A DNA stretch of 64,000 bases from Bugula neritina (lineage: Eukaryota; Animalia; Bryozoa), in assembly GCA_964035545.1 (NCBI GenBank), contig OZ037766.1, positions 30,928,773 to 30,992,772 on the forward strand, in the 5' to 3' direction. The notes below the pieces were generated by a model. The model saw only the letters and a list, made by a program, of their open reading frames with translations, was not told the DNA's origin and did not search any database. Numbering within the stretch: position 1 is the first letter of the stretch; the number at the start of each line of letters is the position of its first letter. Shown here in pieces: positions 9,953-38,333 of this stretch. Both the position numbers and the translations under genes were made by a program.

Positions 9953-10352
9953 ATGAATCAATGGAGACCAAACCCCCAACATTTCACTAGCATCAAACAA
10001 GCATTTATGGCGATTTTCAACTGCATTATGTGAGTCATATGCTTTGAATAAATAATATTTACTTGTCACAAAATCTATTTGTATATCTTTAGCTAACAAA
10101 ATAATATGTGCTCAATTGTTAAACACACATATGTATATTTATATAATACATATATGCAAGTATATACATGTATACATGTATATATGTGTAATATGTACAT
10201 GTATATATATACATACATGTACATGTGTATGTCATGTATACATGTGCAGGTACACGTACATTTACATGACATACACACACAGGCACACAGGTACACATAC
10301 ACATACACACATATGCATATATATAAATATAAATATATATGCATATATATAA

Positions 10353-10407
<55 letters not shown>

Positions 10408-12448
10408 CGGAGTTGTGTTTACTTGTCAGCCTACCCCGTACAGAGTTAGAGCCTGGTGGTACATGTAGAACCCAGGCAATAAAGCAGGCAATGAAAAGAC
10501 ACAGACTCACAGTTGATATTCACACACTCTTCACACCTACTATGGACTGCATCAAAGAGATTGGTGAGTTGAACATATATCTTGCATATTCAGTTTGACC
10601 CCAAATGCATTGTAAGCTTTGCAAATAAATATCAATTGCAATAAATTGTATAGACAGAACAGTGAAAATATATTTAACTTTTCTATGAACTTAGTAATTT
10701 TAGGTTAAATTGCCTGCGCTGCTTAAAATAATTAGTATTTAACAGTTGTGATTTAACAACAGCATAAATACAGAAACCTATAATGCTGGTAAACCAAAAA
10801 ATAAATTTATAAACATATTATACCTTCTTTTGAAGCTTCTCTGCGTGCACAGGATGTGTGTATGTGGTTTTGTGCAATCATTTAAATGCATTTGTGCTGT
10901 TGTGTGTCTATGCAGTTGTGAATGTGTGTGTAAAATAAATTTCATGCTAATCAGAAAAAAATGTGCGTCTAATAATTTGCAGACAATAAGCTATGCCCAT
11001 GATGCATTGAAACAATTATATTCCAATCTGGTATCAAAATTCATACTGAAGTGCGTGCAACTAGGGTATTGCTATTAGATTTTATTGTAGTCTGCATCTA
11101 TATAAGAAATGCAAGAAGCTCAGATGGGGTAATAGACAGTTCAATACTAAAAAGGATAATGACTGAGAAGAAGTCAACGGCCATGACCTTGTTTTATGAA
11201 TACTTACATAAACTGAGCGTGTGCAGAGAGGATAGAAGTTTTGCAATCCTAATATCTGTAAATTCGTTACCTTTTAAATATTGACATAATAATGTGAATA
11301 TATGAAAATCCTAAAATAAATGTTATAACCAATTTTTAATTTTTTTATAATGCTTTTATATAAATCATACATAATTATCATGTCACATGGAAACTATGCA
11401 AAGAAAGATTATTATCTAAAATAACTTTGGTTTATATAAACAATATTGTAGCACTTACTGTGTGTTGGATTAATGATTGCTCAAGCACTGATAGAGCTGG
11501 AAGAGATAAATTATAACAGACTGTGTCACGTCATAGAGTGGCTCTATCACCATCTTATGTACACCAGAGAACCTTCTTGGAGCAGATATCTGGAAGATCA
11601 CGGAGGGTTTGTAAGTTGATAGTTTGCTCAAATCAAAGTTTAAGTTTGTATTATAGATGTTATATAGCTGCTAAAAGATAACTGCAGCTATATTCATGTA
11701 TCTGATTATTTGCATTGCTCTGTATATATAATAGGTTTTTATTGAACTGACATACTGCAACAAGCCTTTAAAATATGCTGTAGTTTTTTTAACTTTAAGC
11801 ATGCTCAGTTAGTGGTTTAAAAGTTTTGTGAATATCGTTTACTATATAAAACTTTTATACAATAAAATAATTTAAAAACTGATGTGTAGTTTGCAGTAAT
11901 AAAAATGTTTATGCTCAGTTTTCCTTAAATGTTGCATTATATCATTATATTTTCTACTAAATTAAAATTATAAAACATAAATACACATTTTTTGCAAAAT
12001 TAAATTATTTATTATTTTCTGACTAGCAGTTTTTGTTTGACTCTATTTAATCAGATATACTACTTCACATTTAGATGTGGCCTCAATGAATAAGCTACAC
12101 TTTATTTAGTAAACACTACAAAATCTTTAGGCTATGTTGACAAACTTACCAAAAGTGAGAGGAGGGATGACCATCTTCACTCAAGTACCACACTTTGTCC
12201 CAAGATCTGTGTCTAACATGTACCAATCACTGGCAGACGTTGCAGCAGAAATAGACTATCTGATTTCCCGTATGCAGAGCTGTTCCTCCGCTAGCCAACA
12301 GGACTGGAAGCAGTCTAGAATAAATGATGCACCAAACACTGATGACATAGTCACACCGAGGCATTTAATAGAAGGAATGGCTCAATCTGAAGTTGTCAAA
12401 ACTGGTGTGAAGTTTTTAGACGCAGTTTTAGACTCATCTTATAAATAA
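9953..12448 (+). CDS. Divergent Bcl-2-fold protein, array member A (~284 aa)
   Basis: Exons 9953-10029, 10430-10563, 11091-11257, 11452-11610, 12131-12448 (phases 2,1,0,0). BH1-equivalent SFAILIS|HLLCVG; BH2-equivalent WSRYLEDHGGF followed directly by a phase-0 intron. Confidence 0.7.
10120..10407. repeat. TA/CA-rich microsatellite
   Basis: (TA)n plus tacatg/caca runs in intron 1 of member A. Confidence 0.9.
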
Positions 12449-12863
12449 AATATTATGCCATCAGCAAGTTTTCACAAAACGTCTACAATTCATGGAAAAA
12501 AGAATGTGGAATATTTCTAATTGCAAAACAAAAGAAAGTTAAATAATTTTATTCTTATTTTAATTTTATTTTGAAATTATTGGTTCACAATAAAAGTTTA
12601 AAAATTCATAACAACATTAAATGCTTTTTATAGCTGTTTTATTTATGTTTTGCTTTTCTTTCACAAAAAAGCAAATATACATAGTGCATTAATATAACAG
12701 TTGGTCTTTTTATAAAAGCTTTTACTAAGAAAAGCATTTATTATCAAGCTGGTGCAGAATTTCAGCTGTCATTTTAGTAGAAACATTCTTAGTCAAGATT
12801 TTATTCTGTAGCACAGCTTTGCAAAGAGAAAATATACATTTTTTACTCAAACAAATTGACAAA

Positions 12864-15541
12864 ATGTTGAAAAGGAAAACAATCAAAACAAGCAAGTCGT
12901 GGACAGATTACATTATGGGAAATACAGTAGAAGCCGAGCTAGCTCTGCTAAAGTCTACAATCATTAGTTTGGTGAAACAAATGTACGTATTTATGTATAT
13001 ACATATATATTTATATTATGTACTTTAATAGTAAATGTCTATATGTCTATATGTTTCATACTAAAACTGTCAACATATTCATATAATTTCCTAGTACCTA
13101 TAATTAGTTAACAAACCTTTCCACTAGTTTTTAATATATACCTGCTGAGTTAATTAGCGCTTCCCAGGCTATAATTCAGTTGACTATTATAAATAATTTT
13201 AGGATCATCTCTCATCCTTCTAATAAAATGGGATTGTCTCCCCGATCTGAAAGCGTGCTCAGATGTCTACAGATGTCATCAGACAACCAAATCTCTGCTC
13301 CTCTGACTGTCAAGTTTATGAACATGAGTAAGTATAGTCATGTTAACTTTTGTATGCTATAATTTTTTTATGACACATTTCGTATAAATTCAATATTCAA
13401 GACTTGTGTATTTCTCAATAAATCTATCAACTAAAAATTAGCATCATTATATAGTTTTATAAGATTGATGCAAAATTTAATATTATTTAGATAGCTTAGT
13501 GCATGTGACTAATTATGCTGAAGTTTTTTTAATCACATGTATGGCTTTGTACAACACTGCAAAAGTTTTATATGGCTTGAATTTATTACTTTATTTTATG
13601 CGTTTCTTTACATACCTCATCTTAAAACATTGTCAAATTTGTTTTATATTCTATAATGTTTTATCATAATGAATGATGTATTATATTGTTTTATATTATA
13701 ATATCACTTGGTGTTATATATAGTGTATATTTTATTATGTCATGCTATATCATAATAACATACTATGTTACATATTTTACCACATTCAGTACAGTATGCA
13801 GACATAGACTCAATCAGACCTGTTCTCAACAGAGTAACAGTGACTGGATTCAGCATGTGCTGGTCAGAAGAACGGATTGAAACAGAACTCTGGTACATTG
13901 TAGTCGTCATTCTGCAGTCAACCAGAGAAAGAAAGTGCTTAGAAAAGTTGCTAGCCGTGGGTATCATGCAATTGTCAATTTGAATTATTTACAAATTTTC
14001 AACATTTAGTTATTTGAATTGAAAGACTTTTGCCAAATTAGCTTAGACAAGAAGTGATGATTATAGCAAATTTTAATGAAATATATATATAAACTACATT
14101 TTACATTCAGCATACTATAAGCTTCTTTTAAAAATAAGAAATGATAAAAATTCATAATGCAAACAAATTTGCATAACAAAAAGATTTTGCTATATTAAGT
14201 TATTGCCAACTATTTATTCCTTTAGATTGAAAAGTTTCTATATATGCAGAATAATAATCAAAAGTTGTATTCTCTACCATTATAACATAGCCAAGTCTAT
14301 CAAAGGGGCTAAAATGAAATATAACTAATGTATTGCACAACACCCATTTTAGTAGTCAAGGAGGGCTTTTAGGTTAAACTTGAGAGTGCCAATATAGTGA
14401 AAGCTATTGTAGCCCTTCGTGCAATAGTATATCTTACTGTATTTCTCTACAGATGATAGTATTGGTGATGGATGTGGTAGAAGATATCATAACCAACTAT
14501 CAAGTTCGTACAACTCGCGTCACAGTGTTCCTGAAATTTTTCTTTAAGAATCTTGACAAGGATTCAATTCCAACTTGGCACGAATTTCTACTTGCCTCCG
14601 GTGGTCTGGTTTGTATCAGTTCACCATCCAATTTATAATATAATATAAAATAATATAATATAATAATAATATATCATTTTTGCTCATGATAATGCATTGA
14701 AGAGTTTAAACAAGTTATATATGTTATATTAAGGAGTAACCTAACTAACATTTGCTTATGTAATAAAGATCTTTAACTGATTTTGAAGCATCGCTTAAAT
14801 TGTTGTGACTAAAACATAGTAAATTACCAGCTTTGCTATAACATTTGAAAGCAAAGATCAATTCGAAATGAAGCTATTTTAAATGTTGTTAAACTTTAAA
14901 TTATCAACAAGGTGTAATGGACTATAGAGGTTTTGACCGATAATAATTATAGTTAATTAATATCTTTGTAGAAGTCTTTATTAGAAGTTCCGACATTGAG
15001 TGTCGGTTTGCCGAGTGACGGTTGTTTTGACGTGGGAACTGTAGCCAGCTGGTACTCTCAGCACACCATCTCAAACTGTCACTGTTACAAGTACAATTTT
15101 ATTAACAAACCTAAAGTTTCTTCAGTCAGAACTTCCTGTATTTGCTTTAGCAATATCAACGGATTATTAAATCAAAATCACAATTTAGTTTTTTCAAAAA
15201 ACAATACACTTCACATCTCACCAATTGTTCACCAAAACCCTTATTCACGTAGTAAACGCCCATTGTCAGTTGCGTTAGGGCCAAAGGAGATTGATAAATC
15301 ACGAAAGCACGCTGAAAAAATGTTAAAGGAGTTCCTAACAACTCGCCGTTCTAAAGCAGTCCCAGCTTTCATTGATCATAATTCAGAGGATAATGGTTAT
15401 CTGTATACGAATGGCAAAGTCTTTGAGTTTCCTCATTTCTCGAAAATGACTGTTCATGGAATTGCTTTAAAGTTAAAGAAGGTCGTAAGAGTTCTTAGTG
15501 AATCAGCAAAAGGTAGTGGACACGAAGAAGTGAGTCTATAA
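12864..15541 (+). CDS. Divergent Bcl-2-fold protein, array member B (~360-380 aa, long C-terminal extension)
   Basis: Exons 12864 (or 12915)-12982, 13203-13327, 13790-13956, 14453-14608, 14972-15541 (possible extra donor at 15530); phases 2,1,0,0. BH2-equivalent TWHEFLLASGGL then intron. Confidence 0.65.
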
Positions 15542-16673
15542 GTATCTTATTCATTGCTGATGTAGAAGCTTCACAAGAAAGCTGAGTATATCACTTGTAG
15601 TGACACTTCCACTCTGACTATTTGTAGTAATCAAATGTTGATAATAAAACTGCTGTTTACTGCTACTATAGTTGATCAGAATGACATTGGAATTTTTTAT
15701 TTTACTTTAACATATTTAGTAGAGGTTTTTTTCAACATGTCCAGTTTTTTCATTGAGCAGCAGTTAGTTTTTGTATTATATTATAATTGCACTCTCATTT
15801 TATGATCATTTGATTTGTATTTGTTTGAATTGGTGATCATGGAAACACAACTGCATTTCTTATAATTTCTACTAATGTAATGCTTTGTCTTTTATAGATC
15901 TGATTTGTATTATTTTAGTAAAAAACTAGCTACAAACTATAAATAAAATAAAATATTTAGGATTATACACCTATCGTGTTTGATTTCTTATTTCTGATAG
16001 CTAAAACAGTGATTCTAAATACAAAAAAACAATTATAGCCTAAATTTTCAAACAACTTCACCTGCATGTGCTAATTTTATTTTAAGTACAAATGCTAATT
16101 ATATAAATAAATTAGGCATATTAATTTATGAAATAATTGAGAAAAGCTAAATTTGACAAATTCTAAAGTTAAAAGTGTCCATTTTGATTTAGGCTATATA
16201 ACTAGAGTGATAGCCAAAATATCTTTAGCTTCAAGCCAATAAAGCTATATTTATATACAGCTTTGATTGCTTTGCTATAACCAACAGCTATATAAGCTAT
16301 ACATGTATGTGTGTATATAAAACCACGTAAGAAATTTTTTGTATATAAAGCTGGTGATCCTCAAATAGATATCATTTATGATTTTATCCAGTGTACGAGG
16401 TATGGACATTTAGTACCTTTTCAGTTAAAGCAGCAGTAGTTAGAATATACTATAATATTTATACAATTTTATAGAATAATTTATACTATGATTATGTTTT
16501 CTTCTAAATATTTAACATTTTGATAAAGGCTTTATTAATTTGCTAATGAAAAAAATTTAAAGCATTTTTCAGTTTGAAATATTTCTATAGAATAGAAATT
16601 AAAAGTAATGCAGCTATGTGTAAAATCATGTTTTATAATATTTTAGCTTTTTTATTAATCTGAAGAAGAAACA

Positions 16674-19514
16674 ATGGCCGACGAGAAAGAACTGAGTTCA
16701 GATTTGGCTTCTTTGTCTCTTCATGATGATAACAGGGAGCATATCGTGATGAAAAGAATGCTGCTTGGATGTCTACATAGAATGTAAGTTTTTTTATGAC
16801 TCGGCATTGTGTATTATAATTGACAATGTAATTTTTAAAGAATTTATTTTTGTAGTACATTGACATGTGCTAGCAATTAGTGTATTTTACCAGTAAACAA
16901 TTGCTTGACAAAACTTATTGCAGTAGGCTAAAGTGCTATTTTTAAATAACTGATGGATTGTTTTAATGCGTACATTATTTTGGTTTTAGCGTTCACTTTT
17001 TGTAGTATTATCATTAATTTTTACGTTAACGATGTGAGCATTTTAAAAAAATCATAATTGCATTATGCTACCATTATATACAATCATTGAAGTTCACATA
17101 TTAATTTTAACTTATAAATACTGATTGTAAAACAGGAAAACTGACTTGCACAAAGCTAATAATTTAATTGAACGAACTTTTAAATAAAGCAAATCCATGA
17201 GCGGCTAAAAGCCAAAAAACTTTTGATAAATAAAAAAAGGTAAAAAATATAAGCCAGAAAATACAAGTCGAGTAATATAAATTATAATGGAATAGAAGTA
17301 ATTAATGTTATTGAATTACTCAAAGAATTTTAAAATTGTTTACCAGAATTATATTACTTCATAAAATATTGGCTGAATAAGTTATAGTTTTGTTCAGCAT
17401 GTGTAAAACAAATGTTGCAGAGTAGATACCTACAAGAGACATTCTCTGGAGCTGGAGGAAAGATATCAGCAAGCTGGTAAAGTTGAAAGTGCACTACAGA
17501 GATTCTGTGAGCTCGATGATGACGACGATTACTGTTTCATACGTCTAATGATACATGCAAGTAAGTTTACCTTTGAAAATAATATCATAGGTAATTGTTT
17601 TTGAAACGATGTACATGTACCTTCAATATATAATATCTTAAGTAACTGCAAATTCAATAATTTAAGTTTAACAAATGTAAATTTATTATTTTAAATTAAT
17701 TTATTAGATTATACAAAAGCAGCTTATATTTATTTAAGTTGAAGATATTGTCACACGAAGTCACTAAATGCCACAAATTCAGTTTCATCTATTTATGGAA
17801 AAAATTTTCAGTGAAGTTTATATTTTAACATTTAAAAAAATTAGTTATGAAATTGCTAAACTATAACAGTTTATTTGCAATTTTATCACTATAATTCTTT
17901 TTGCTAATATAGCAAATGTTGCATTATTGAAAGTCTTAAAAAGAACGATTGGTTTACAAGCACATTAGCTTGAAGAATGATAATTTTGGGTCAACATGTT
18001 CAATAGTTCGAGATGCAGATGTGGTAACTGGAGAGCCTGTCATTAGCCCCATACTGGTAGAGAGGCTTCTTCACTCCCTTGCAAGCTGCGAAGGGCAGCT
18101 GATTTACAATCAGGTGATGGACTCACTAATAGAAAATGACCAGAACCTGTCAGTGGTTGTCACGGTAAGTGAATGTCCTTCTCACAACAGATATTATTGA
18201 TTGGATTGGTAAAAATTGAGGAATAAAGTGTCTATATTTATAAAAAAATATGTATATATATATACATATATATAATTATATTATAATATAATAATTAATA
18301 TTATGTGTTTATATGTAAATTATTTCTTGCTGCGTGGTTTTCGACAAGTTCAAGACAATTCTCAATTTTTTTAATGTGAATCAAATTTTCTACATTGAGC
18401 TACTAAAAAAATTTTGAATCACCTCTTGAGGTATTGAAAATCCAATAATTGTAGTAGACCTACCAATGATTACCATTATACTATATTAGTTTGTTTATTT
18501 TACTACAAATTACAACTTAACTTATTATTGTCTTTTAAATATTAATATTTTTTGTATCCGATACTTGTAATATGCTATGAGAGGAAAACGTATATTTAAA
18601 GCTGCTTAATTTAGGCAATTGCATTTTCAACTCCCAATTCTTTATATAATTGTTTATCTTAGATCACCATAGTGACTGTAGCACTAGCAGAGGAGATTAT
18701 CCGAGACCAAACTGTTAACACGATGCGAGTTTGCTACATAGTGGAATGGTTCTTCAGTTATATACACTGTAGCTCATTGCAACCCATTCTAGAGAGCGGT
18801 TGTGGTCTGGTAAGATGTCTATCTAACTATTGCATAAATATGTTTGTATAAAGCTGATATGCTATTATTGTATCAATCTATAAAAACATTGCATAAATAT
18901 GTCTACACAGTTGTATTAATTCATCTATAATATTGTATAAACCTGTCTATGCTATTGTATAAACCCATCTATGCTATTGTATAAACCCATCTATGCTATT
19001 GTGTGAATCTATTCTAAAAGCTCTCTATGTTAATGTGTATAAAGTGTTTATGCCATTGTAAAAATCTATTCATACTGCTACATATAATACATATCTATAT
19101 TATTTATATTATATTTAATGCATTGTTCTTTTTTTGAAATACCATAAAATGGCAGGTGTCAAACTTAAGTTGATAAGATGTATATTAAGTGTAATTATAC
19201 TGCGTGTTGTATTAAAACAATTTTATCTAACAATTTTTGGCAGTCAACTAAATTTAAGTAATTGTGGTTGGTTTTAATGACACTTATGTTTTTGCTCTGA
19301 GTTCATTATACGGTTTGTGATAGTTATATATAGTAGCTTCAATCTCATGAACCTGAATCTCATAATATTTTAGATAAACTTTATGTTAGATGACTTGGAT
19401 TTCGAAAGTGTAAACAGATCAGCCATTTTGAATACTGTCAACAAACAGATAAAGAAAACAAGAAAATGGCAGCAGAATGTAGAAGAAGAACTCAGAAAAG
19501 AGTTGTGCCAATAA
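16674..19514 (+). CDS. Divergent Bcl-2-fold protein, array member C (~231 aa)
   Basis: Exons 16674-16783 (acaATGG; ...EHIVMKRMLLGCLHR), 17421-17560, 18007-18164, 18663-18809 (MRVCYIVEWFFSY...LESGCGL), 19374-19514; phases 2,1,0,0. Confidence 0.7.
18900..19060. repeat. Degenerate ~21 bp tandem minisatellite
   Basis: Repeated ctatgctattgtataaaccca-like units in intron 4 of member C. Confidence 0.7.
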
Positions 19515-19722
19515 AATATGTATTACTGCTTGTCTGTGTTTGTATATTATGTTTGTATGCCAGATGCAGTTGTTTATATTTTGTATACATTGTCTATTAT
19601 ATATGTCAAACTAAATGATTCACAATATAAAGAATGTAAAAGTTTAATATAACTTATCCTCTTTGCCTACCCTCATTTATCACTACTCTGCCCTGTTTGG
19701 TTGTTGGCTTTATATAATACAG

Positions 19723-19725
<3 letters not shown>

Positions 19726-19785
<60 letters not shown>
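19726..19785. repeat. (TA)n microsatellite
   Basis: Uninterrupted TA run. Confidence 0.95.
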
Positions 19786-19788
<3 letters not shown>

Positions 19789-19910
19789 TATAGTATGAAA
19801 AACATGTATTTTGCATACTAATCATGCACTGATATATTTATTTAGATAAAATCTATTACTAATGCATATATATTTAATTTAATATACTTATATATATAAT
19901 ACGTTTATGA

Positions 19911-20045
19911 GGGGCAGCCTTGGTCTATAGAGGTGAGAGACTGAGTAATTAGTGAACACAAGAATAAGGGTTCAGTCGATCCCAGAACAAGCTATTACTT
20001 GATGATGTTGAGGACAAACAGTCATATATATAGTTGCCCTCGTGG
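19911..20045 (+). mobile_element. Diverged SINE-like copy (related subfamily)
   Basis: Begins ggggcagccttggtcta like 25386; contains a gggttc...gatcc B-box-like segment and a tgatgttga block. Confidence 0.4.
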
Positions 20046-20870
20046 CGGCTTGTGACAGCATTATAGAAAGCACAAGTATATTGAACTTACTCAAGAATGT
20101 TTTCTGCATGTAAAACATAATTATAATGACACTGCATAGAATAAGGATAAAAAAATGTTTATACAGTAAATACTCAAGAAGCAAATGGCACCCATGACAT
20201 GTGACCAAAATGCAATACTATGAAACCACCTTTGTCTTGCTGGATGTACTATAATACCAAAAATTTTCATCTATAGCTTTTTTCTGAACAAACTTGCAGT
20301 TATCATTATATGCTGCCAAATTCAATTACCAAGTAACATTTTTAAATGCTAAATACCTATATATATACAGATATGGCAAACTTTATTAAATAAAAAGCTC
20401 TTTTATTAAAAAGTAGACTTACTATATATAATATAATAACTTAGCAATCTTTATAACATCTGCACTTAGTCTAATTTAAAAGATAATGCTTTTGTTCTGA
20501 TAACCGATACTTGATAGACAAAAAAGTCGCCTAAACTTAAATGTTTTCATGCAAAGACAATATTCTAAAAATTTATTTTAAACTTTTATATATAATATAC
20601 TCACTTCCAGAAAAATTTGATAATCTAATGCCTATAAAAGCCCAATTCACCACAATTTTCTGTCCAATAATTTTTTTCTAAAAGTGACTGACCATAAACG
20701 CATATAATATTGTGTCTATATATACGGCTAAGATAGGCAAAATATTTTTCATATAATTTGCATAAAAATATTAGTGTGGCATCATTTATAAATGGTTTCA
20801 CATAACTTTCATAAGACATTTCAAAACTCGGAGGTATTTTGTTCAGGCTGGTTTTATCCTTGACACAGAA

Positions 20871-23514
20871 ATGTATTGCCCACAGCAACCGGAGTCCAGT
20901 TGGAAGCCATTTCACCTGTTTGCTGCTCACAACAACACCGAGGAGGGTCAGGTGCAGCAGATAAAGATTATCCTAGTCGGGCTTGTCCGTAGAATGTTGG
21001 TAGTATTCTTGTTGTGAAAACTTGAAAAATTTTACACAGACATGTTCCATATATTGGATTGCCTTTTGCAAAAATGAATTATTTTAAAGATGCTAATTTG
21101 GATATTGCAATTCTACAAAATTTACATAGATATTGCCAAAGGCTTTTGGTCAAGTTTATATTAGTGAATTTACGCTTACACTAACGCAGTAATCGCAATT
21201 GAAATATCTGATATCATAAAATTTAAAAGTTGCAAAATCAAAAAATAGTTCATTGAAAAGTGAAATAATTTGTTTTTAACTTTATGTCACTGTTTTTATA
21301 CAAAACACACCATTGTAAAGTGTGCAGCTGATGTGTGCAGGAGACCATAATAATATTGTGATCATGATCATACAGGGCTGATACCACCATGGTTGATGAC
21401 GAGGGCGAATGCATGTCTCTGCATGCTTACAATGCTATTAATGAGTTAGACAACCAAAATGTTTCACCTTTCTTCTATAAAGCACCACACATTGATGAGA
21501 TGATTAAGTTGGGTAAATTTTTATGGACGTTATTAATATGATAGATATTATAACTATATTATATTATATGTTATTTATACCAATGATGTATTATAGAACC
21601 ATGTTTCTGAATTTGTCAGCTTCTTGGAATCAACAGTTATTATTTTTTGTTGACAATAAAAAATATATGATGTTCCCATTGGTAAATTATATCTTTTACA
21701 AAAGTTATTGAATATAAATAATTATATATATGTTACCAAGTAACTCGATTCTACATGTGATTTCAGATATGCAGTATTTAGCATATACTCTAATATATTC
21801 TTAGATTGCTTTAATCTAGTATAACCTCTTTATATAATTTAAAACAATGCAGTTATAGATGACTACAAAAATAGCTACATTGTAATGCATATAGAGTATT
21901 TTGTAGCTGAGTTTTCTAAACTCGTAGACGTAGCTCCCCTTGTGAGTCAAAACATCAGCAACATTATTCTTCGACATTCAGACGATAAAATATCCAAGGA
22001 CCAGTTTTTTCACATCTTGCAAGTAGCAAATGAAGCATCAGAAGATGGCAATATTGGAGAAATATTTGCTGTAAGTTAAAAAGTTATGGAAAATTTACAT
22101 TATTGAGTAATTTGAAAACTAAGTTTGTCATAAAGATCAAGATGACTATTTAATTTTGCAATTGCAATTGCAGCATGCATATTCTTGAACTTGGTGACCT
22201 TTAGGACAAGTTTGATTAGATTAGGTACAAATTTAATTTAGGCCAATATAACACTATAATTTTTTAAAAGTTTGAAATGGCATTGACTGTGTGATTTATG
22301 ATGCAAAACCCACCTTAATGCTCTCTAAATATAATTACAAAGACAAAACCATAATAATATACTTAATCAATTTCAAGCAGAGATAAAGGGTAAATTGGAT
22401 CAACTTTTAAATGTCTTTTGCACACTTGGTGCAAAAAGAGCATTCATAACTCACTAAAATCTTCACTATTTTCACTTATTATAGCAAATGTTCATCACTG
22501 CCTCATTGGTTGAGACGGCCATAGTGAGCAATGACGTTCCTTGCTACAGAGGAAATGACCTCATTTCCTGGTTTGTTGAGTATCTCAGCTGCGTCCAGAA
22601 AGTTGGCGAAAGTCTTCTAGAAGCAGGAGGTTTTGTGAGTATAAAATTTACCATAGTTTTATTTCGAGAATGATTATTGTATACACAGCAGTTTAATTGT
22701 GAGTTTAAATTTTTTAGACTTCAATGTCTATTATTTCAATAAAGCGGTTCATTGATCTCTACGAGTAAACATTTTTTGAAATTTTTTAAAACTGGCACGG
22801 CTTCAAATTTAGGATTCCTTTATTTGCAAACTTGGTACCAACTATTTCTAGCATGTAAGGAGCTTTATGCTATAATACTTAAACTATATACTAAAGAAAA
22901 CCAGCAGGTTATATAAGGAATGCATATATATAGTTCTAATTAAAATCAAATCCTGTGTTACAGAGAGAATCATATAATGCTTTAACTGTGCATGCTCTTT
23001 GATCAGCTGACTAGGTTATAGAGTATTATGTTTGTCAATAAAAGCTGCAGCATTAGAAGACTATAATACTATATAATGTACATTATATCTAGTCATCGTT
23101 TAGTTGTTTCAGAGTTTCACACAATTTAATGATTTATAAAATCAAATCTACTCTAATTATTATTTAATTACTAACTGCAGTTTTGCAAAAAATTATTTGC
23201 ACCATGTTTTTAGCTAACTTATTAAGTAATCATATTTAAATACTATTTTCTTGCAACTATTCACATGCATCAGTTTTAAAGATTTATTAATTTTTTATGT
23301 TCATAAAATGACGATAAAATTATGCGGCACATACAATACATTTTTTTTTTCTTTTATTTGGTTTTATTTTTTTAATATTTTGCATTCCTTGCTTTAGGCC
23401 TTGATGTTGGAGCCCGGTAATGATTTGTACATTTGGAACTACGCAGAGCAGTTGTCTTCTCATATTGTCCAAGTCATTCAGGAGGTGACTACTAACTCAT
23501 GTCCAAAAGTTTAA
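20871..23514 (+). CDS. Divergent Bcl-2-fold protein, array member D (~230 aa)
   Basis: Exons 20871-20995 (...QQIKIILVGLVRRM), 21376-21512, 21907-22070 (BH1-like DGNIGEIFA), 22485-22634 (ISWFVEYL...LLEAGGF), 23398-23514; phases 2,1,0,0. Confidence 0.7.
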
Positions 23515-24744
23515 GCCAAACCTCTGTCAATTAGTTTTTTTTTTCTGTATGCATGTTGATGTTTATGATTGATAAAAGTTGTGAAACAATAAATTTTATG
23601 GATTCGTATTTTTTAAAAGTTGTTTGTTTAAGTTATATGATGTAACTTATATCCGCAACATTAAATTAGCAATTATACATGTACATAATTGTTTAGATAA
23701 TAGTATGAATTGTCCTCTCATAAGCCAATTGTAAAAAGTGGAAGGTCAACATTGGGAAAACCAAGTATAGCCTTAAAATATGTGTAACTGCTAAATGGAA
23801 ATTACGTCTTAATACTTTCTTTACTGCATGTAGCATTTTTCAGCTTAATTTGTTATACTTCTATACAGTACGCCAAGAAGTAAGTGCATCTTTAGTGCAA
23901 AATATGCGTATGTTAAGTATAATTTTAAGTTATTGAAGTCATTTTTACAAATTATATTTTAATTGTTTTGAAATCAGAAAAAATTATTTTAATATAATTT
24001 GTACTGAATTGTGTTGCTTACTCACAACTTGTGTATCTTGAAAATAGTTTATGATACAACACTATAATGACACAAAGTGCTGAACATTGTTATAGCAGTG
24101 GCTTGCGAAAGTTTTCCAAAGAATGGGTTGGTAATCACTCAACCAAAGCTGGTGACAAAACTTACACTGAATAACACTCTGTTTCCATTATAGCATTATT
24201 CGTATGAGATTTTTATTTGCCTAATAGAAATATTTATACGTTGAATGAAGCCGCAACTATAAGTTAATGTAAACCATAGTTAATCCATACGAACATTCAT
24301 TTGAATAGTATGCAGTTATGGAAACACAGTGTATATGAAGAAACATATCCTAAACTCAGCCTATATTATAAGTATATTCAATTGTTGTACTTAGCCAAAC
24401 TAACACTTTTAAAGTCCTATTATGCATAAAATATTGTATACTTCTAAGACTTTTATATTTCCAGCAAATTTACAGAACTGATCACATTATAAGCTAACCA
24501 ATCTTGTATAGCAGAAGTAGTATCATTGGAATAATTTATTATAATAAAAGCAAACTATTTTTATTTAAGTATAATATTTCTATAGCAAAATCATGAACAT
24601 AACAAAATATTTCAGACCGAAATGGTTTTATTTTTGGCTTCACATAACTCTATGACAAGCTTCATAAAGGTCCAAAAATACCTCTAATTTAAAAATAAAA
24701 AAAGTTAAGAATTTCAAAGTGCTGGCACAAAAACTTCAATCAAC

Positions 24745-27480
24745 ATGTTTCCGAGCTCAAGATACATCGAGAAGAACCAGCTGTGCCAAGTAGAGCAGCT
24801 GATCATATCTCTGACAGAAATATTGTAAGTTTATTATTGCAGCTTTTAAATTACTTTTTTTAGAATTTCCATTTTTTTAAATTCCTTATTGTATAGCATT
24901 ATATAAATAAGCTTTATTGTGCACAAAAAATGTTAACTGATTGCATCATAGAGACAACAATATGTACATATGCCATAAGCTTTTTCTCTAAAAGCTTGCA
25001 TATCAACAATGCCATAAAATAACACTTAATTAACACATATATATATACATTACATAACATTGAAGTCAAATCTTATTATAGTATTATCATTTTACCATGT
25101 ATACTACTTTAAAGATATACATATGTCACAATCCAAAATTATATAATATATAATTAAGTTTTAGGAAAAATTTACATTATTATGCATTTACCTGCCATTC
25201 TTGTATTTGACTGCTAACAGGTTAAAGAGTTACCGTAACCCTTGCAACCAAACTCAAATAGACTATGTCATATTGCAAGCTACAATAAACAAATCTGTCT
25301 CTCCAGCAGTGGACCCGAAAGTCGTTGGGAGGTTCAGAAGTATTGGTGAGTATAAATATTGTTTTGTGTTTTGTTTTTAAAAATAGGGGCAGCCGTGGTT
25401 TAAGGGTTATAGAGCAATTTTGCTTAGTAAACCCGAATTATGGGTCCATCCGGACAAAGGCCATTGGTGATGTTAAAAAGAGCATGGAGTCATTATTGCT
25501 TTTGTGTCTCATCTTACTAAGTCCTTAGCTCAATTTAACAAACATTCCTTACTCTCAGGTGTTTCTCACAGGGATGGTAAGAAAAAAGTTTTGCGAGTTT
25601 TGTGCTTTAAAAATAGTTTGAACAAGTTTTGAATAAGTTCTTTTGCTAAGTGTGCAGCCTATAAAAAACTTTAACCTTCATCAACCATGACTGCTGTGTG
25701 TAAACGTCTTTACAAGTGTTATTGTTTTACAGTATTCAGCCGAATGATACTGTCTAAAGATGATTCTTATTCCCAGTACATCTCTGAGTCTACTGTAAAC
25801 AGCATCTGCAGAAGCCTGAACATCGAACAAGCGCAGATAAATTACAAAAAGCTCTTAAGTTGTGCAATGGACTTAAACAAGAGAACGCTGAGCTCGCTGT
25901 GTGCTGTACGTATAAACTTGGAAAATTTTTATTTTTATATTTACTCATTAGTGAAAATGTTTAAACATTGCAAATATATCCATTTGTGTGGATACTAACG
26001 AGATTTGAGTTTTTTATTCAGCGTGCTAGCATAATTTGCCTAGTAAAATCTTTTCTTCTACAGGGCTATAAGGTATTATAAAAATATATATTTCAATTAT
26101 TATAACTTAACTATAAAATTAATATTAAACCCAGAAATCGAACATGCAGTCATCCAAATTCCTAATACACAAAATATTGCACAAATTTTAGCCTTTTCAG
26201 GGTCTAAAATTTTTCCTATGTTTACACTTATACTGTAGCTCTAAATATCTACCAAGCTTGCAAACACATTTACACTGTTTTATGCTATAAATATAGTGTT
26301 TTATTACATACCAGTTAGTAAAATTGGAAAGTCAAATAAAACAGTTATAGAACTTTAAAAGTCATGATAGAATTGTCTAGAATATTGAAGGATTCAATTT
26401 AATTGGTTATGCATATTTGTAGAATACGCTTTGTTACTGCGTGTATATGTTTTTGTAAATGAAATCATTTTACTATTTTGCTAAAAGTTTTAAGTTTGTC
26501 ACCATCTCACTTACAGTAAATATTTACATATGTAGGCAATAGCGATGGGGCCATAATAGCGATTATATGTAACTATAAGTTTGTTTAATAAAAACGTAAT
26601 AATAACTCTATACATGTAATTAGACATATAATTTAATTAAAGCATTATACTAGAACTAACTTAACGTTGATTTTTATTCAGCTGCTCGCAATCACAATGA
26701 CATTGATAGAGCAAGTGGCAAAGGATCAGGAATGTCCACAAGACAGAGCATTCAATTTGATTAACTGGTTTAAAGAAGTCATCACAGATGGGCAGCAGAC
26801 CACTTACTGGATTAAATGGCTGCTTTCTATTGGAGGATTGGTAAGTCACATGACTTTGTAGTAGCAAGTAACGAATATAACAATATTGCTGTACGACTAA
26901 CTGAAATTTAGTATAAATACTAAAAGGATATAACGTTGTACTTAAATATTACTACTATAGGAAACTATAACAGTGGTATTAAAAGAACATTCTTTATACT
27001 ACAATATGATTTAACTTATAAATTTTTGAGCACCCGCTATATTAGTTTAATTTTACCAATGTCCCTTGATTGCACAAACCCAATATAATAATTAAAAATC
27101 TCTTTCTTATCGCATTATTTTTCAGGATGTTTCTTTTATAGTGTTTTGTAAATAACAATTTTTCATCTATTTTAAAAAAATAATGTTTTGTTCTAAAAAG
27201 CGACCAATAATCATGATTTCAGAGAACAATATTGAAGCTTCCAGATTATTCTGACTATTGCCAACCTAGCGATCTTTCTGCGGAGTGGTCGACAGAGTGG
27301 TCCATCCAGCAAATTACTAAGAACACAGCTTGTATTATGAGTAAGATGCAAATGGTGCAACGTCAATTGGCTGACAGCCAACAGGTTGGGCAGAGGGTTG
27401 ACGAATCATGTAACGAACAGAAAAGCCTAACAGTAGATGGTATGGCGGCTTTCCATAACTGGTACCAAATGGAATGTTGA
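24745..27480 (+). CDS. Divergent Bcl-2-fold protein, array member E (~264 aa)
   Basis: Exons 24745-24824, 25221-25345, 25733-25905, 26682-26840 (LINWFKEV...WIKWLLSIGGL), 27223-27480; phases 2,1,0,0. Confidence 0.72.
25386..25595 (+). mobile_element. tRNA-derived SINE-like repeat, copy in intron 2 of member E
   Basis: GGGGCAGCCGTGGTTTAAGGGTT head (A-box-like); reverse complement of the copies at 511, 2034 and 28382. Confidence 0.65.
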
Positions 27481-28381
27481 TCTCAAGATGGAGTGATAAA
27501 ATTTTCTATTCAGCTGAGACAACTCTGAGATTACAATAACTGGACACAAGTTTACTAATTTTTATTGCTGTTGCAATAAACAAAACAAAGACATATAGTT
27601 TTTATATAGTATTATATTTCTCAAGTTAAATTATAGTAACTTCACAGTTATTTTAAATATTTTTAATGATATTCTTTTGAAATAGTAGTAAAATAAATGT
27701 TGAAAATAGTGCAATAACTTCAAATTATTTTTTACTAAAATAAAAATCATAATAGAGTAATAATGTATTGCATATTTATGATTGAGAAGCACCAATCTAA
27801 TAATAATAAGATTTTTTTTGTAAAAAAAATTATAAATAAAGTTAAATTCAGGCAAATATGAAACTTTGTGCAATAAAAACATTAATTATATAAGTGCTTC
27901 CAAAATTTGCTGATCAATAAGGTCTGGTGTCTTTTTTTATAGTGCTTTAGCAAACTCAATAAACTATTATTGATATTAAACAATGCCTAAAACAAGCCAA
28001 TCAGAAGAGCTAAAGTATGCAGAAAAGAAAACAAATCCAGAAGATGATGATTATGTATATTAGCTGACCACTGATTGTCAATGTACTGCTACATTTAAAT
28101 AGGTATAGCAGATACTTTAAGAAATGAATTATATATTTTTTATGGTTACAATTTAAAAGATTGAAATTCTATATAGATTGTCACATGTTGGTCAACAAAA
28201 TCACACTTATTTTGCATGCTTAACAAAAAACTAAGTTAAATTGATGCGGAAACTCATCTATTATAGCCAAAGCATCATCTTTTCAATGTGGAATTCTACA
28301 ACCGAATGTCATAGCCTTGGAGGTTGTAATGAAATAAAGCCAATTGAACTTACTGGAAAGCATATAATAATAAGAAAAATT

Positions 28382-28604
28382 CAAGCAAGTTTATAGTCAC
28401 TTATATCTCTGTGAGAAACCCCTAATGGAAATAAAGGTTTTTGTTAAAGCTGGCTAAGGTCTATAATAATTTAAATGAAGCACACGAAGCAATTATGACT
28501 GGATGCTCTTATTCCTAACATCACCAATGACCTTTGTCCGGCTCGAACCCATGACCCTGTGTTTACTAAGCAAAATCTCTAACCCCTAGACCATGGCTGC
28601 TCCC
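28382..28604 (-). mobile_element. tRNA-derived SINE-like repeat
   Basis: Reverse strand reads GGGAGCAGCCATGGTCTAGGGGTTAGAG...GGGTTCGAGCCGG, with A-box-like and B-box-like motifs. Confidence 0.7.
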
Positions 28605-29072
28605 AAAGGCATATTATAATAAGGTTGAACAAAAAGTCTAAGGCTATGAGAAGAGCTAGTTGTAGTAATCTAAATAGTATAAACAACTAAGATGAACCTG
28701 CTTTGTCTTCAAATTGATGAATTCATAGATTATACATGCTCATTACTATTTAAAAGAATCTAGCTTCATTAAATTATTCTATCGTGCGACATAAAGTTAT
28801 AAAACTTCTAAGGCAAAAAATTTAAATTAAAAGCAAGTTTACTTGAATTACTAATGTTTGATACGATGCCAGTAATTCTTCAATAACCATATATTCAAAA
28901 ATAAGTATAAAGGTAATAAAATTTAACTTTAACTTATATGATTTTGACAACACTTTTGTCTGTTTTGATTTGAAACTGTAGCTTTTTATTATAGTATTTA
29001 AAACATTTTAGTTTAAATTCTTGAACTATCAAGTTATTTTGAAAAATAGTTGATTGCGTGCCAAATAAAAGT

Positions 29073-31462
29073 ATGGCAGGATGTGCAACTCCTTATACTA
29101 TACGAACAGTCACTGTAGCACTAGTTAGGAGAAGGTAACTCCCTATTTATACAAGTGCACAATGATGTTATATATGCAAAGATTAGAAACCAAGTAATAT
29201 GTTATTCCCTTAAATGCTGCACAGTCACATAAACCCAAATCTTAGTTTTTTTAAGAAACTTTAATCTTTAATCTTCGAGCTTCTGGCTGCCAACTATCTG
29301 CATACAATTAGAAATATACTTTTTAAACAACATGATGGATTTTACCTATCATTTATTCATTTTCACATTGTTAGAAAGCTTAGTACTCTTGTACTTTACA
29401 AAGCAAGGGCATACTTTAATCTAAAACAAGTCCAAAATTCTTATAAGATAAAGATTTACTATGATTGCATCACATCTAAAATTATATACATTTTGAGCAG
29501 CTTTTTGTCAGTCATTTAAAAGATATTGCATTAAGGTGCAAGATATTAGTTGAAGTTTGCACATTTCAAGCTGTCCTGCTGATGAATAAATTACTAGCTA
29601 GGTGGTAAAACTTCTGTACTTATAAAAGTCTGAGTGTTATTGGTTGAAATAAACTATAATCTGATCTACATAAACAAGTTAAGCAGATTGATAGTAAGTT
29701 GTTGTACTATATAGACTGAGAGAGGCAGGACACCTTGCGGGGCAAGGAAGGAACCCTCGACTATTATATGCACTGTGTAAACTTCAGTCCCACGCTATCT
29801 CTGCTGATATAGACAATTCAGATCTCATCAACGCAATACGCTTAATAGGTGAGATATTTTATTTTCTATATATTATGCTTGTTATACATTGTAAGGAATT
29901 GTGGTTCCATCAGAAGTGGCACAACTCCCATATTTTACTTTCTATATATGCTTGCTATTACATATTTTAAGCACTAATTTTGTAACTTCGATTAAACCTG
30001 CCGTGTTTTTTTACAAGAAAAATATCTAGTAGTAAACTCAACTTTTAGAAAACATTTCTCACTTCGATTTTGAGAGAAACTATCTACGTTTTACAAGACA
30101 TATTATATTTACTGGCTGTGAAGATAAAGCTAAGCAAAAACTTATGAATCATTTGGAGAAAATACTACAAAATGGCCTTGGCTGGGATACAGTAGTGTCT
30201 GTAAGTATACTGAAAGAAATGCTGCTTTTATCAATCAAATGCTTTACTAAATTGGTGGCAATCCTTTTGCTCTACACTTGATGTTTATTTAAACTCAGCA
30301 AAATTATGTTTGGAAATATTACCTTTTGTAAAACAATCTAACATTATTATCAATCAATAGCACACAGGTCACATGTGATAAATGATATAAAATACAATAT
30401 ATATTTGTAAATAAATATTTATATGAACAAGTAATTGTTACAGCTGCTGATAAGTGTGAGTGTATTGGCTGAGCAATGTTACACAGTAAACTCTAACAGG
30501 ATGGTGGATATTGTTGAATGGTTTATGACGGAGTCCAGTATTTGTGGAATTGGCAGTGCGAATATAAATCGATGGCTAGAGTTCAAGGGAGGCTTTGTAA
30601 GTGTAAGAGGTGCTCAGCATGGGTTGAGGTTTTCATCTACTCTGAATGGAGAATATACTAATTTTTTATAATGCACTATTTATTGTAATTAATATTCATT
30701 GTTTTAATGGGACAATTTATGTGCTCTTAAAAGTATCTAATCAATACTCTTTCTGCTTTTAAAAATTGTGAAAATATAACCCCTGGTTTAAATCTGTTAT
30801 TAGCCATTATAAGTACATATAAAATAGCTCATTGTATGCACATGAAATAAAATAATTATGGGGATAAAAGAGGAGATAACTTTAAATAATCAAGTGAATT
30901 ACTCGACTGCTTTACTTTGACAATAAATTCATTTGTTGCGCGCAATTTTTGATTGATATTTTGGTAATTTCAAATTTGATTATATTTTGATATTTTATTT
31001 TGAGTGTGCCTCTTTCCATAATATCGTTCAAAATAATGTTTATACTCCCCATGTCAAGCAACATATCTTTCTATGTACAATTATATGCCATGGTATATAC
31101 TGTATTCTTTATAATTTCTATATCCTTGCATTAATTTCGATTTCTGAAACATTTCTATATATCGTTAAAACTTCCACATCTCTATGCAATTCCCTAAATC
31201 TTTTCAATTTAAAGATTGCTCTCATAATTAACTGAATGTCCAGCGTATTCATTTCATCAGCTATCAGTCTGTCACCATTTCAAGCTGAAAGTTGTTCTTA
31301 CAGGAACAGCTGGAAAAGATGCCGGTGGGTTTGCTAGGAGTGGATATGAAAGATTGTGGGGGCAATACCCTGGCTATGATTGCCCATAGAGTTGATGATA
31401 TTTTCACTAATGTACAGGAGATGGCAAGAACTCCTGGCAAAGGTAAAAGAAAATCAAGATAA
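29073..31462 (+). CDS. BOK-like Bcl-2 family protein, array member F (~219 aa), the least diverged copy
   Basis: Exons 29073-29134, 29715-29848, 30049-30200, 30444-30596, 31304-31462. ALVRRRLREAG (BH4 end; BOK has ARLLRAG), NGLGWDTVVSLLISVSVLAEQC (BH1; BOK has GITWGKVVSLYAVAAGLAVDC), RWLEFKGGF (BH2; BOK has TWLRRRGGW). Confidence 0.82.
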
Positions 31463-32060: not shown

Positions 32061-34938
32061 TCACTTCTTTTTGTGCTTAATATTTGATTTAAAGGCTTGC
32101 AAATTAGACTCGGCACCCCATAAACTTTTGAAAACATTTCTTTCATGCGTCACAGCTTCGGAGTAACTGAGTTTATGACTGTTAATTGCGACACTCTTTA
32201 GGCCACGTATAACGTGAGGTGCTAACCCTTTAAGTTTAGCTTCTATAACCTCCAGTGACAAGTCTAATAGAATGTCATCAGAGAGTTCTCCAGGTGGAGG
32301 TAATAAATAATCTACTAATCCTTTGGATAGGGCCGTGTTGGCATCCATCCCCTTCTCCATAAGCAAGATCTCTAAGGCTTTATGATAGCCCACTTTCTCA
32401 ACCAGATGTACAGCTCCTGCTAGGCCGGGTACTATGCCCATCCTACCCTGTAAACACATTCAATAAACTATTTGACGTCTTTGGCTATGAACTGTTTTTC
32501 TAGACACTCAAGACATGTGCCTTTTGTCACGGGAAAAGTATGCTGCTACTGTTTAAACGTAAAATCCTGCAGCATGCAACGTGTTTATTGTTGACTTATA
32601 GATACAGACTTATAATAATAGTTAAAGTGATATAAAAATAAGGAGATAACTCTACAGTTGCAGTGCATGCGTGTATAATATTTGCAGGCAAAGGGTGTAA
32701 GAAGCATGTTGCGTGAAATAATATTTTCTAAATAATGTAAACTCTGCAAGAGTTGGTAAAATATTTTTTTTCAAAATGCAGTGGTCAAAATAAACTGCAT
32801 ACATACTATATATACATTATATATAAACTATATACATGTATCACATATTACATTAAACTGTTGCTGTAGGTAGATTGAGTTAAATGAAATGTATAAGTAT
32901 AAAATATATAACAAAATCTTTAAAATTACATTTTTAACAGTAGAAAAACTTAGTAAATTGACAGCCGGTGATGTTATAAAGTTGTATAATATACTCGGTG
33001 CTTACAAACCTGAATGAATTGTATGTTAGTCTGTGGTGAGGCTATAACAAAATCACAGGCTACTAGTATCTCAGCACCACCTCCTAGTATGTTACCTACA
33101 TATATTAGTATATTAGTATTATTATATATTCCGAGTAGGTTACCTGCTATATATCATTTTTATGTTTTACTATTATTACTGTATTATTATTCCATTATAT
33201 TATTATTACTGTGTTACTATTTTATTATGTTGAATTATTATTACTGTTATATTATTTTATATCATTACTGTATTAATATTGTATCATTAGTATTATTGTA
33301 ATGTTATCCGATTATACCGTAAATATTATAATTGCATTGAAACTATGCATATTACAAAGAAAATATGAAATCCCTATTCAAAGAAATTACATTAATTGCC
33401 TCCTCAGCTCTAACCCTAATACTAATAATATACTACCATTTAATTACAGCAAGCAACTAAATAATTAGAGCTGAAATTACACTCTAACTGCTAGCTCTTG
33501 GATAGAGGAGGTTAGATCTGCATGCTCTGCTAACTATAATATACCATCACACCTTGTACAGCGGCGTAGGTAGGTGTGGGAAGGTGTCTGAGTGAACACA
33601 ATGTCTCCTGCATGAAATAACTAAACCTCTCCCCATTCGCAGGGTCGGCCATTCTCTTCACCATGTTCAAATCAGCTCCAGCACAGAAATGTCCTGTGAG
33701 AAATGCAAGTGTTTGTAGCTATTTTATCTATTGGTCAGTTGAATATGATTCAGTAGTATTCAGTCAGCGTGTATAGTTTTCCCCAATACAATTTTTTATA
33801 AAAAAATCACTGTAAATACTACTTTTTGGAGTCATGTGCACAAGCAAAGAAATTTTACAATTTTCCTACATATAATAATATTATATATTTGAACATTTTT
33901 GCCTTACTTTTATATTTTTTAAAATTGATTATTATAATGATATTACACATTGTACTTTTCTCTCATTTCAGAATTTCATTAAACTTACTGAATACTTAGT
34001 AAGCAACATTTTTGTGCAGATCAAAGTCAGATTAAGGTGAAATACTCAACATTTATATTTCGCCAAAAACTAAAAGACTACACTTGAATGGCAAATTAGC
34101 TGTCTATTGTTGAATAAGATACCAACACTAACCTTGAAGACCTCTAACAACAACTGCCTTATGCTGCTCGCTAGTAGAAAGTTGGCGTATGATGTCATAG
34201 AGGGACACGCACATGCTTCCTATAACATGTTTTTAGTGCTAGAGCGTATTACAAAGATATAACTCTAAGTAGAACAGAGTATTGTATAGAATCATGTCAA
34301 ATCATGACGTAAACCTTGACGCAAAAAATGATAAATAAAAGGAAGAATTATTCAAGTAACAAAAATTGACTTAAAATAAGTTTGAAAGTTGAAACCAAGA
34401 TTGAATTACAAGATTTCTTGTTACATGCATAGAATAACCCTTAAGAGAAGGATCCAACTTAGTTAGAAAATCAGATCAGCTGTATATTAGTTTGCTGGTG
34501 TCACAGGCACAGCTGAAAATCTCACTCAGAGAAACATAGGCTTTGTTGTTGTAATTTACACACTGCCTTGTAATGGTTTCCATGAATATTGACTTGAAAA
34601 CGATAAAACTACAGATTAGTACCGCTATTATAGTCAACAGCGCACCTAAAGTCTTTATTATAAACAACAAATGCTAAAACAGCCACTATAGAGTAGCCAA
34701 CAACCTTCTCACCTGTAAGAGCATTCATGCGGCCAGAGTGCAGCAAACTAATAACTGCAATACATCCATTATCTCCACTATAACTCAAATCAACATGGCC
34801 GCCTTGAAATTGATTAAGTTGTTCTCTAATTTCGGTGAGATTGAGACTTGAAGCAGTAGAGAGCAGTTGCTTTTGATAGGCTTTGTTAAATAAAACTGAT
34901 GTGTATTTAACACAGTGAGATATCCTTTGCAACAGCAT
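32061..34938 (-). CDS. ECHDC1: Ethylmalonyl-CoA decarboxylase-like crotonase-superfamily protein (~308 aa)
   Basis: Exons 34938-34713 (LNQFQGGHVDL...RMNALTG), 34219-34133, 33693-33553 (FCAGADL), 33095-33010 (LGGGAEILVACDF), 32447-32061 (MGIVP...ERNVFKSLWGAESNLQA). The N- and C-terminal motifs are typical of ECHDC1. Confidence 0.88.
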
Positions 34939-35319
34939 AGCTAAAAATAAAGATAAGTCAAATAAATGTCCTAAAGATGTTTTCATGAATCGAATGGTTA
35001 ATTGTTTTTTTTTATTATGCTTGAAAAAGTTCAGTTTTTGTTGAAGATGGATATAAACTTACATAAAAATTGCGGTAATCATATTTAAATAGTTCTATAC
35101 AAATAAAGAAACTGCTGAAAATCAAATCTATTTATAGGATGCACAATGAAAATGTTCAGTCAAATTATTATGAGTACGACTATCTAATTTTACTTTCAAC
35201 GTTAATGTTACTATAAGTATAAGTATAAATACAAAAATACCAATTACTGAATTAGCATATAACTATGAGTATATGAAACTAAAAGTCAGTGACGATGTCA
35301 ATGTTAACAGTTAAACTTA

Positions 35320-35425
35320 ATGGCTATCACTATCAGTATCAGTATGAGTATCATAATCGGTATCACTATCACTATGATGAGTATGACTATGAGTATCAGT
35401 ATGACTATGACTATGAGTCAGGGTG
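35320..35425. repeat. Degenerate hexamer repeat (TATCAG/TATGAG/TATGAC)
   Basis: tatcac tatcag tatcag tatgag ... tatgac tatgac tatgag periodicity. Confidence 0.7.
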
Positions 35426-35753
35426 AGGGTGGTTGAAGGACTTGGATAGCTACTGACTTTATTTAGCTTGTTTCAACTTTAACTCAACTTTTATTACTTC
35501 AATCATCAATGCATTTCAATGTAAAACGATTAAAACAGTAGAGCCCGTAGACAGTGGTGGGTTGGGAATGGCAATGAAGTATGAAGCAGAATTGGAGCTT
35601 TGATACTGATAATGATATCATAGGGTAGCATGAGAAACAGGAGACTTTATAGGCTTGACAAAACCGGAATGGCTGTACATCTTTAGCTCGTTTTTGACAC
35701 ACGTGCTTAGTGAAGTCCTGCGAGCTATCTATGTATACCACACTGGAACAATT

Positions 35754-37750
<1,997 letters not shown>

Positions 37751-38300: not shown

Positions 38301-38333
<33 letters not shown>

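Follow-up and report, generated by a model that had tools for sequence, protein, structure and literature searches.

The window analysed here, a stretch of 64,000 nucleotides from contig OZ037766.1 of the bryozoan Bugula neritina, carries six plus-strand genes (A to F) within positions 9953-31462 of AT-rich animal DNA. In genome coordinates the array occupies C2:30,938,725-30,960,234. Our reading, to which we give a probability of roughly 0.78, is that these are six intact protein-coding genes derived by old tandem duplication of one ancestor from the multi-intron pro-apoptotic (BAX/BOK-type) branch of the Bcl-2 family, a branch hugely expanded in this genome, and that their products would be soluble helical bundles that tune cell death. 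How readily a cell kills itself is governed by Bcl-2 proteins, of which an animal usually has few. The array is a highly divergent variant of this known family and is of interest for the evolution of cell death. An earlier note on this DNA had described the genes as a tandem array of extremely divergent, BOK-like members with a Bcl-2 fold.

Five of the gene models (A, B, C, E and F) are complete, each with an ATG first exon ending in a phase-2 donor, intron phases 2-1-0-0, a length divisible by three, no internal stop and a terminal stop, as checked through the split codons and exon frames (Table 1). All six genes have an exon 2 of 125-140 nt (entered in phase 2, left in phase 1), an exon 3 of 152-173 nt (entered in phase 1, left in phase 0, with an acceptor ambiguous by 6-12 nt in genes C and D) and a terminal exon entered in phase 0 and closed by a stop. 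The last exons span 38-189 residues, and the 189-residue one of gene B had no Pfam match. Exon 4 (159, 156, 147, 150, 159 and 153 nt in A to F) had a polypyrimidine/AG acceptor and a GT donor in every gene, and its C-terminal residues, directly before the donor, were GGF, GGL, CGL, GGF, GGL and GGF, as had been reported. Two candidates were rejected while the models were built. A first exon of gene F at 29582-29604 was discarded because a deletion of 29560-29599 in the orthologue removes the stretch, which points to 29073-29134, and an apparent IGE resembling the third Bcl-2 homology motif (BH3) at the ends of exon 2 was a read-through of the G/GTGAG donor. Intron 1 of gene A (10093-10420) is nearly all TG/CA/TA microsatellite, which yields long spurious open frames on both strands.

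Exon 4 links the array to the Bcl-2 family at the level of sequence profiles. A whole-genome six-frame scan with the Pfam Bcl-2 model (PF00452) gave 29 matches outside the window, many of which span only profile positions ~55-100 and finish with GGW followed by GT; these are 141-nt exons running from phase 0 to phase 0, equivalent to exon 4 of A-F. When the alignment of the six array exons (A1) was compared by hhalign with an alignment of 15 paralogue exons from the same genome (A2), the two matched with a probability of 96% (E 4e-9, score 39.8 over 45 columns), at an identity to the paralogues of only ~13%. As controls, 100 column shuffles of A2 scored 8.3 ± 2.0 (maximum 14.6), the reversed alignment scored 8.3, and a score of 31.8 was left after removing the last five columns, which hold GGW/GGF. 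A2 in turn matched BAX residues 115-158 in solved structures (E 3e-11), and A1 aligned to a canonical, single-exon Bcl-2 gene of the same genome over its last 31 residues, stopping exactly at GGW (E 2.8e-4). On this profile evidence, the predicted exon 4, which would cover alpha5 to alpha7 and end at the BH2 position, shares its origin with the corresponding exon of the BAX-like paralogues, and detectable sequence homology is confined to it.

The gene architecture extends the resemblance to the remaining exons. Two BAX-like paralogues on contig C3 (19.927 and 19.9295 Mb) were rebuilt in full and a third in part. The two complete ones have five coding exons with phases 2-1-0-0. Their intron 1 falls two bases into a codon, just ahead of the L-x-x-(A/E)-G with which helix 1 ends; exon 2 (107-116 nt) stops after the first base of the BH3 glycine codon, exon 3 (155 nt) closes five residues past the BH1 tryptophan, exon 4 (141 nt) closes at GGW, and exon 5 bears a hydrophobic tail. 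The array genes match these paralogues in exon count, order and approximate size and in the phases and positions of all four introns. In C, D and F, intron 1 again precedes the L-x-x-A-G that ends helix 1, gene F retains ...VRR-R-LREAGH across intron 1 and has GW plus five residues ahead of intron 3, and a phase-0 intron directly follows the BH2 position in all six genes. An intron after GGW is highly conserved across the Bcl-2 family (PMC8998228), so the earlier note's use of it as a family hallmark is well founded. BAX, BAK and BOK genes have 4-6 exons, and a BH3 divided over two exons sets BOK apart from the other mammalian members (PMC8998228); skipping of BOK exon 2 deletes BH4 and part of BH3 (PMC7523462). 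Because the exon 4 profile match is joined by intron positions and phases identical to those of bona fide paralogues, descent of the six genes from BAX/BOK-type Bcl-2 genes appears very probable.

We compared the array with a second Bugula lineage, represented by the publicly available Bugula neritina draft GCA_010799875.2 (L036, which contains E and F complete, a portion of D and the neighbouring enoyl-CoA hydratase gene), and by DNA from two Joint Genome Institute (JGI) metagenomes (L037 with A; L038 with D and exons 1-3 of E; L039 with B). Gene A was set against L037, gene B against L037 and L039, gene D against L036 and L038, and genes E and F against L036. With ~86% identity in aligned intron bases, many insertions and deletions (indels) and a synonymous divergence of 0.15-0.37, the second lineage is divergent enough for a selection test. 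Pooled over A, D, E and F, the exons were 92.8% identical across 2664 aligned nt with 0 indel bases, compared to 86.2% identity across 5497 aligned nt and 637 indel bases (116 per kb) in the introns. Every acceptor and donor readable in the orthologue was retained, one acceptor being blurred by an alignment gap, and exon substitutions were predominantly synonymous. Indel-free alignments were obtained for exons 2-5 of A (splice sites retained; ratio of nonsynonymous to synonymous substitution rates, dN/dS, 0.09), exons 3-5 of D (0.07) and all five exons of E (0.05-0.10) and of F (0.20). Exon 2 had 7 synonymous changes in A and 7 in E, exon 5 of D had 5, and none of these three exons had a nonsynonymous change. 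The lack of exon indels beside indel-rich introns, the retained splice sites and the mostly synonymous changes place these exons far beyond chance, and it is nearly certain that A, D, E and F are real and under selection; our confidence is lower for B, C and the start of D. In exon 5 of gene B we found one 3-base insertion and a 4-base deletion whose effect is undone by a 4-base insertion a few bases downstream, so that the orthologous exon is open over 191 codons and the frame is preserved in both lineages. The claim that the genes have been kept intact is thus supported by the open models and by purifying selection in four of the five testable genes (A, D, E and F). In addition, the AUGUSTUS model P0001 of the draft assembly, an orthologue of E, joins exon 4 to exon 5 at the identical GGL/R junction. 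The annotation of that assembly drew on transcriptome hints (PMC7576161), and P0001 is an independent prediction of the E junction, not proof of it.

The canonical motifs of the family have been lost from the array. The BH2 tryptophan is replaced by F or L in all six genes, the canonical NWGR of BH1 occurs in none (a tryptophan is found only in F, as GLGWDT, with unrelated residues in the others), and the BH3 pattern L-x-x-x-G-D is absent, the codon split by intron 2 (glycine in the paralogues) being V, I, I, A, V and E in A to F. Gene F has the most family-like motifs, namely the helix 1 end ...RR-R-LREAGH, GWDT at the BH1 position and GGF at BH2. The maximum 19-residue Kyte-Doolittle hydropathy of the last exons was 0.15-0.86, compared to 2.36 in the tail of a paralogue, and the six predicted proteins lack a C-terminal membrane anchor. 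A partial AlphaFold model of the E orthologue P0001 (exons 4-5 only) showed four helices in alpha5-to-alpha8 order, with a predicted local distance difference test (pLDDT) value of ~70-80 over the first 60 residues and a low-confidence mean of 58.9. Given their descent and architecture, the six proteins probably keep the whole Bcl-2 bundle. The original description as Bcl-2-fold genes therefore stands as regards family descent, through the exon 4 match and the intron architecture, but it has to be narrowed in that detectable sequence homology is restricted to exon 4, and it had overlooked the loss of the anchor.

The array forms a clade of its own within a large family. In a maximum-likelihood tree of 36 exon-4 sequences from the same genome (47 columns, with long branches and an unresolved internal order), the six genes formed one group (ultrafast bootstrap 97; Shimodaira-Hasegawa-like approximate likelihood ratio test, SH-aLRT, 94), and terminal branches measured 0.8-1.5 changes per site. 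The current rate is slow (dN 0.02-0.03 for dS ~0.15-0.37), and set against ~1 change per site between paralogues it indicates old duplications followed by constraint and not ongoing rapid change, except in B. This points to old tandem duplications of one ancestor; of the two ages the earlier note had left open, old or fast-evolving, the first is favoured and the second applies now only to B. A profile search of 1.84 billion representative proteins returned only Bugula orthologues of A, B, D, E and F, together with low-complexity noise.

The array is not an isolated oddity in this genome. Searched with A2, the genome yielded 36 matches at E <= 1; the alpha5-BH2 exon is present in at least 34 of them and mostly closes with GGW before a GT. 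Together with the six array genes, these at least 34 further Bcl-2-type loci make ~40, some of which may be pseudogenes, and several lie in tandem arrays. The largest group described here, at C8:9,874,256-9,942,874 (L022, L015, L023, L040-L044 and L024), comprises at least 11 BAX-like genes arrayed in tandem over ~70 kb. Each has a ~141-nt exon, which finishes in GGW (or QGW/CGW) followed by GT in nine of the 11, while two minus-strand genes are without such an ending. Mammals have nine members with a Bcl-2 fold, Hydra 11, Acropora millepora 11, Amphimedon 7 and sea urchin up to 8, the invertebrates surveyed reaching at most 11, with Bryozoa outside the survey (PMC8998228). The Bugula neritina count is far above that of any animal in PMC8998228 and roughly three to four times the invertebrate expansions there. 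A full-text literature search combining Bcl-2 and bryozoan gave only pharmacology and unrelated work. At one Bcl-2-like locus (L013, C6:15,567,325-15,568,600) the frame is open for 376 residues through ~25 copies of a ~10-residue tandem repeat (YSTIYYIVICL-like) located between the BH1-side and BH2-side coding parts; the repeat is either an intron open by chance or a repeat insertion in the alpha5-alpha6 region.

Table 1 Features of the six-gene array (window positions; CDS, coding sequence) and further groups of Bcl-2-type loci in the genome.
Feature	Position	Strand	Coding exons	CDS length	BH2 position
Gene A	9953-12448	+	9953-10029, 10430-10563, 11091-11257, 11452-11610, 12131-12448	855 nt, 284 codons	GGF
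Gene B	12915-15541	+	12915-12982, 13203-13327, 13790-13956, 14453-14608, 14972-15541	1086 nt, ~361 codons	GGL
Gene B exon 1, alternative start	ATG 12864	+			
Gene C	16674-19514	+	16674-16783, 17421-17560, 18007-18164, 18663-18809, 19374-19514	696 nt, 231 codons	CGL
Gene C exon 3, alternative acceptor	start 18013 instead of 18007	+			
Gene D	20816-23514	+	exons 2-5: 20816-20946, 21907-22070, 22485-22634, 23398-23514		GGF
Gene E	24745-27480	+	24745-24824, 25221-25345, 25733-25905, 26682-26840, 27223-27480	795 nt, 264 codons	GGL
Gene F	29073-31462	+	29073-29134, 29715-29848, 30049-30200, 30444-30596, 31304-31462	660 nt, 219 codons	GGF
Further groups of Bcl-2-type loci	C8:4.776-4.786, 5.106/5.137, 8.425/8.438, 10.79 Mb; C3:7.507-7.517, 19.927-19.930 Mb; C2:19.838-19.843 Mb				

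A number of results weigh against our interpretation. The PF00452 genome scan placed none of its matches in the window, and a Pfam search with 16 single-exon pieces (exons 2-5 only) returned chance-level matches and no PF00452, in line with the suggestion of the earlier note that members might escape motif annotation. HMMER profiles of exon 4 and exon 3 matched no Bcl-2 structure in PDB. A PDB sequence search with exons 3 and 4 of F gave nothing significant (exon 3 reached E ~1.3 to Bcl-2 and Bcl-xL, aligned on their BH2 region and not on BH1), and an ESM Atlas look-up with exon 4 of gene A gave no usable match. Comparison by hhalign of exons 2 and 3 with the paralogues and the canonical Bcl-2 gene produced no signal, and exons 1-3 and 5 had no detectable similarity to the paralogues, to the canonical gene or to one another. 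The partial model of P0001 had its four helices in the expected order, but Foldseek found no match for it in PDB. At the level of gene models, the array as first described, with six five-exon genes of the given phases, exon sizes and open frames, holds for five genes, but a search for an ATG first exon with a phase-2 donor gave none for gene D, and a metagenome scan for an orthologue of its 5' part gave none either. For gene C, neither the protein profile search nor a metagenome scan with exon 4 recovered orthologous DNA, and splice sites and open frames are its sole basis. Gene B, with a dN/dS of 0.6-0.77 against L037 and L039, is under weak constraint and evolves fast. Transcription and the splice junctions of all six genes are predicted from DNA, and the function as binding partners, which we consider the most likely one, is something we infer.

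The strongest rival explanation accepts the genes as real but holds that only the C-terminal helices encoded by exon 4 derive from Bcl-2, the N-terminal half having diverged or been replaced, so that no bundle forms and the function is unrelated to cell death. That exon 4 alone is detectably alike, both within the six genes and to their relatives, that the BH1 and BH3 motifs and the anchor are missing and that the last exons vary so widely in length would all fit such an origin. However, exons 1-3 keep the size, order and phases of the paralogues, with intron 1 before the same L-x-x-A-G in C, D and F, and exons 2 and 3 are under strong purifying selection, most plainly in exon 2 of A and E, which makes this explanation improbable. 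Decaying or untranscribed gene relics are much less probable still. The models are known from DNA alone, the public draft annotation models only part of one gene, and both the dN/dS of B and the undetected start of D would suit decay, but five models are complete and open, exons without indels and conserved splice sites persist across ~0.15-0.37 synonymous substitutions per site, dN/dS is low in four genes, and even B is in frame in both lineages. Chance or convergent likeness in an unrelated helical family that ends an exon at GG-aromatic, for which the missing Pfam, PDB and HMMER matches and the ~13% identity might speak, is hardly credible, as the profile-profile score lies far above that of 100 shuffles and survives loss of the GGW columns, and four common intron positions and phases would need a chance origin too.

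If the six genes are indeed an old, selected offshoot of the BAX/BOK-type branch, their proteins would still fold as Bcl-2-type helical bundles, but soluble ones. They may act in the cytosol by binding membrane-anchored BAX-like killers or BH3-like ligands, and could hold such killers back or prime them, thereby tuning cell death while forming no pores themselves. We propose this role because the anchor and the motifs for pore formation are lost and because anchor-less folds such as BID, Bfk and the poxvirus proteins provide a precedent. As a speculation, the natural setting could be the repeated degeneration and regrowth of bryozoan feeding zooids. A bolder version is that the array represents a soluble, anchor-less Bcl-2 branch unseen by sequence models within the largest Bcl-2 family yet found in an animal (~40 loci), made up of diversified cytosolic regulators or decoys that would choose which BAX-like killers fire, for example in zooid cycling or in the response to microbes; we regard it as possible but doubtful.

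A family of ~40 loci that includes a selected clade shedding its anchor and canonical motifs amounts to a natural experiment on how far a fold can drift while staying useful. It also serves as a warning that domain-based censuses undercount the Bcl-2 family, and as a methodological example in which shared intron positions and intermediate profiles from the same genome can recover members missed by hidden Markov model (HMM) searches. The array genes are concrete candidates for studies of programmed tissue turnover in colonial animals.

The next gene after F, on the minus strand, belongs to the enoyl-CoA hydratase family (window 32061-35700; last-exon open reading frame 32061-32459). Pfam ECH_1 and ECH_2 match its draft-assembly orthologue, and the last exon is 92.7% identical between the lineages. 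Further along, the window contains tracts of (TA)n, 1.1 kb long with a higher-order periodicity of 115 nt (36195-37320; G+C content 14% over 36-38 kb), and of (ACT)n, 290 nt long (38228-38518).

Among known systems, the closest are the BAX-like paralogues of the same genome (C3:19.927 and 19.9295 Mb; C8:9.87-9.94 Mb), which share with the array the five exons, phases 2-1-0-0, an exon 3 of ~155 nt, an exon 4 of ~141-159 nt, the exon-4 profile homology and the arrangement in tandem arrays. NWGR, LG(D/N), GGW and a tail exon of hydrophobic character are all retained in the paralogues, whereas the array genes have none of them in canonical form; the former are detected by Pfam or BAX structures, while the latter are undetected and form a separate clade. 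With respect to BAX itself, the linking profile A2 fits alpha5-alpha6-BH2 best (residues 115-158; e.g. 1F16) and the profile of paralogue exon 3 matches BAX up to ~residue 111, but the array genes are unmatched to BAX by HMMER and have neither the GD of BH3 nor the BAX tail helix. BID, BCL2L15/Bfk and the poxvirus proteins N1, A52, B14 and K7, all from lineages unrelated to the array genes, are soluble bundles of the Bcl-2 type in which BH motifs are weak or missing and which work through partner binding, not pore formation. To our knowledge, none of these proteins occurs in a six-gene array within a ~40-gene expansion.

The likeness to BOK proposed in the earlier note applies to gene structure. 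Like BOK, the array genes have several exons, a BH3 position split over two exons by an intron and a phase-0 intron after BH2, and the helix-1 end LREAGH of F is of the family type. No BOK sequence match was obtained for the array genes; they show no one-to-one relation to BOK, form their own clade and are linked to the family through the BAX-like paralogues. BOK also differs in being membrane-anchored and in having, after an untranslated first exon, four that are coding (PMC7523462), compared to five coding exons and no predicted anchor in the array. Finally, the known invertebrate Bcl-2 expansions (PMC8998228) are likewise lineage-specific increases of multi-motif Bcl-2 genes, and Bugula neritina presents such an increase with at least 34 loci plus the six array genes, largely in tandem arrays.

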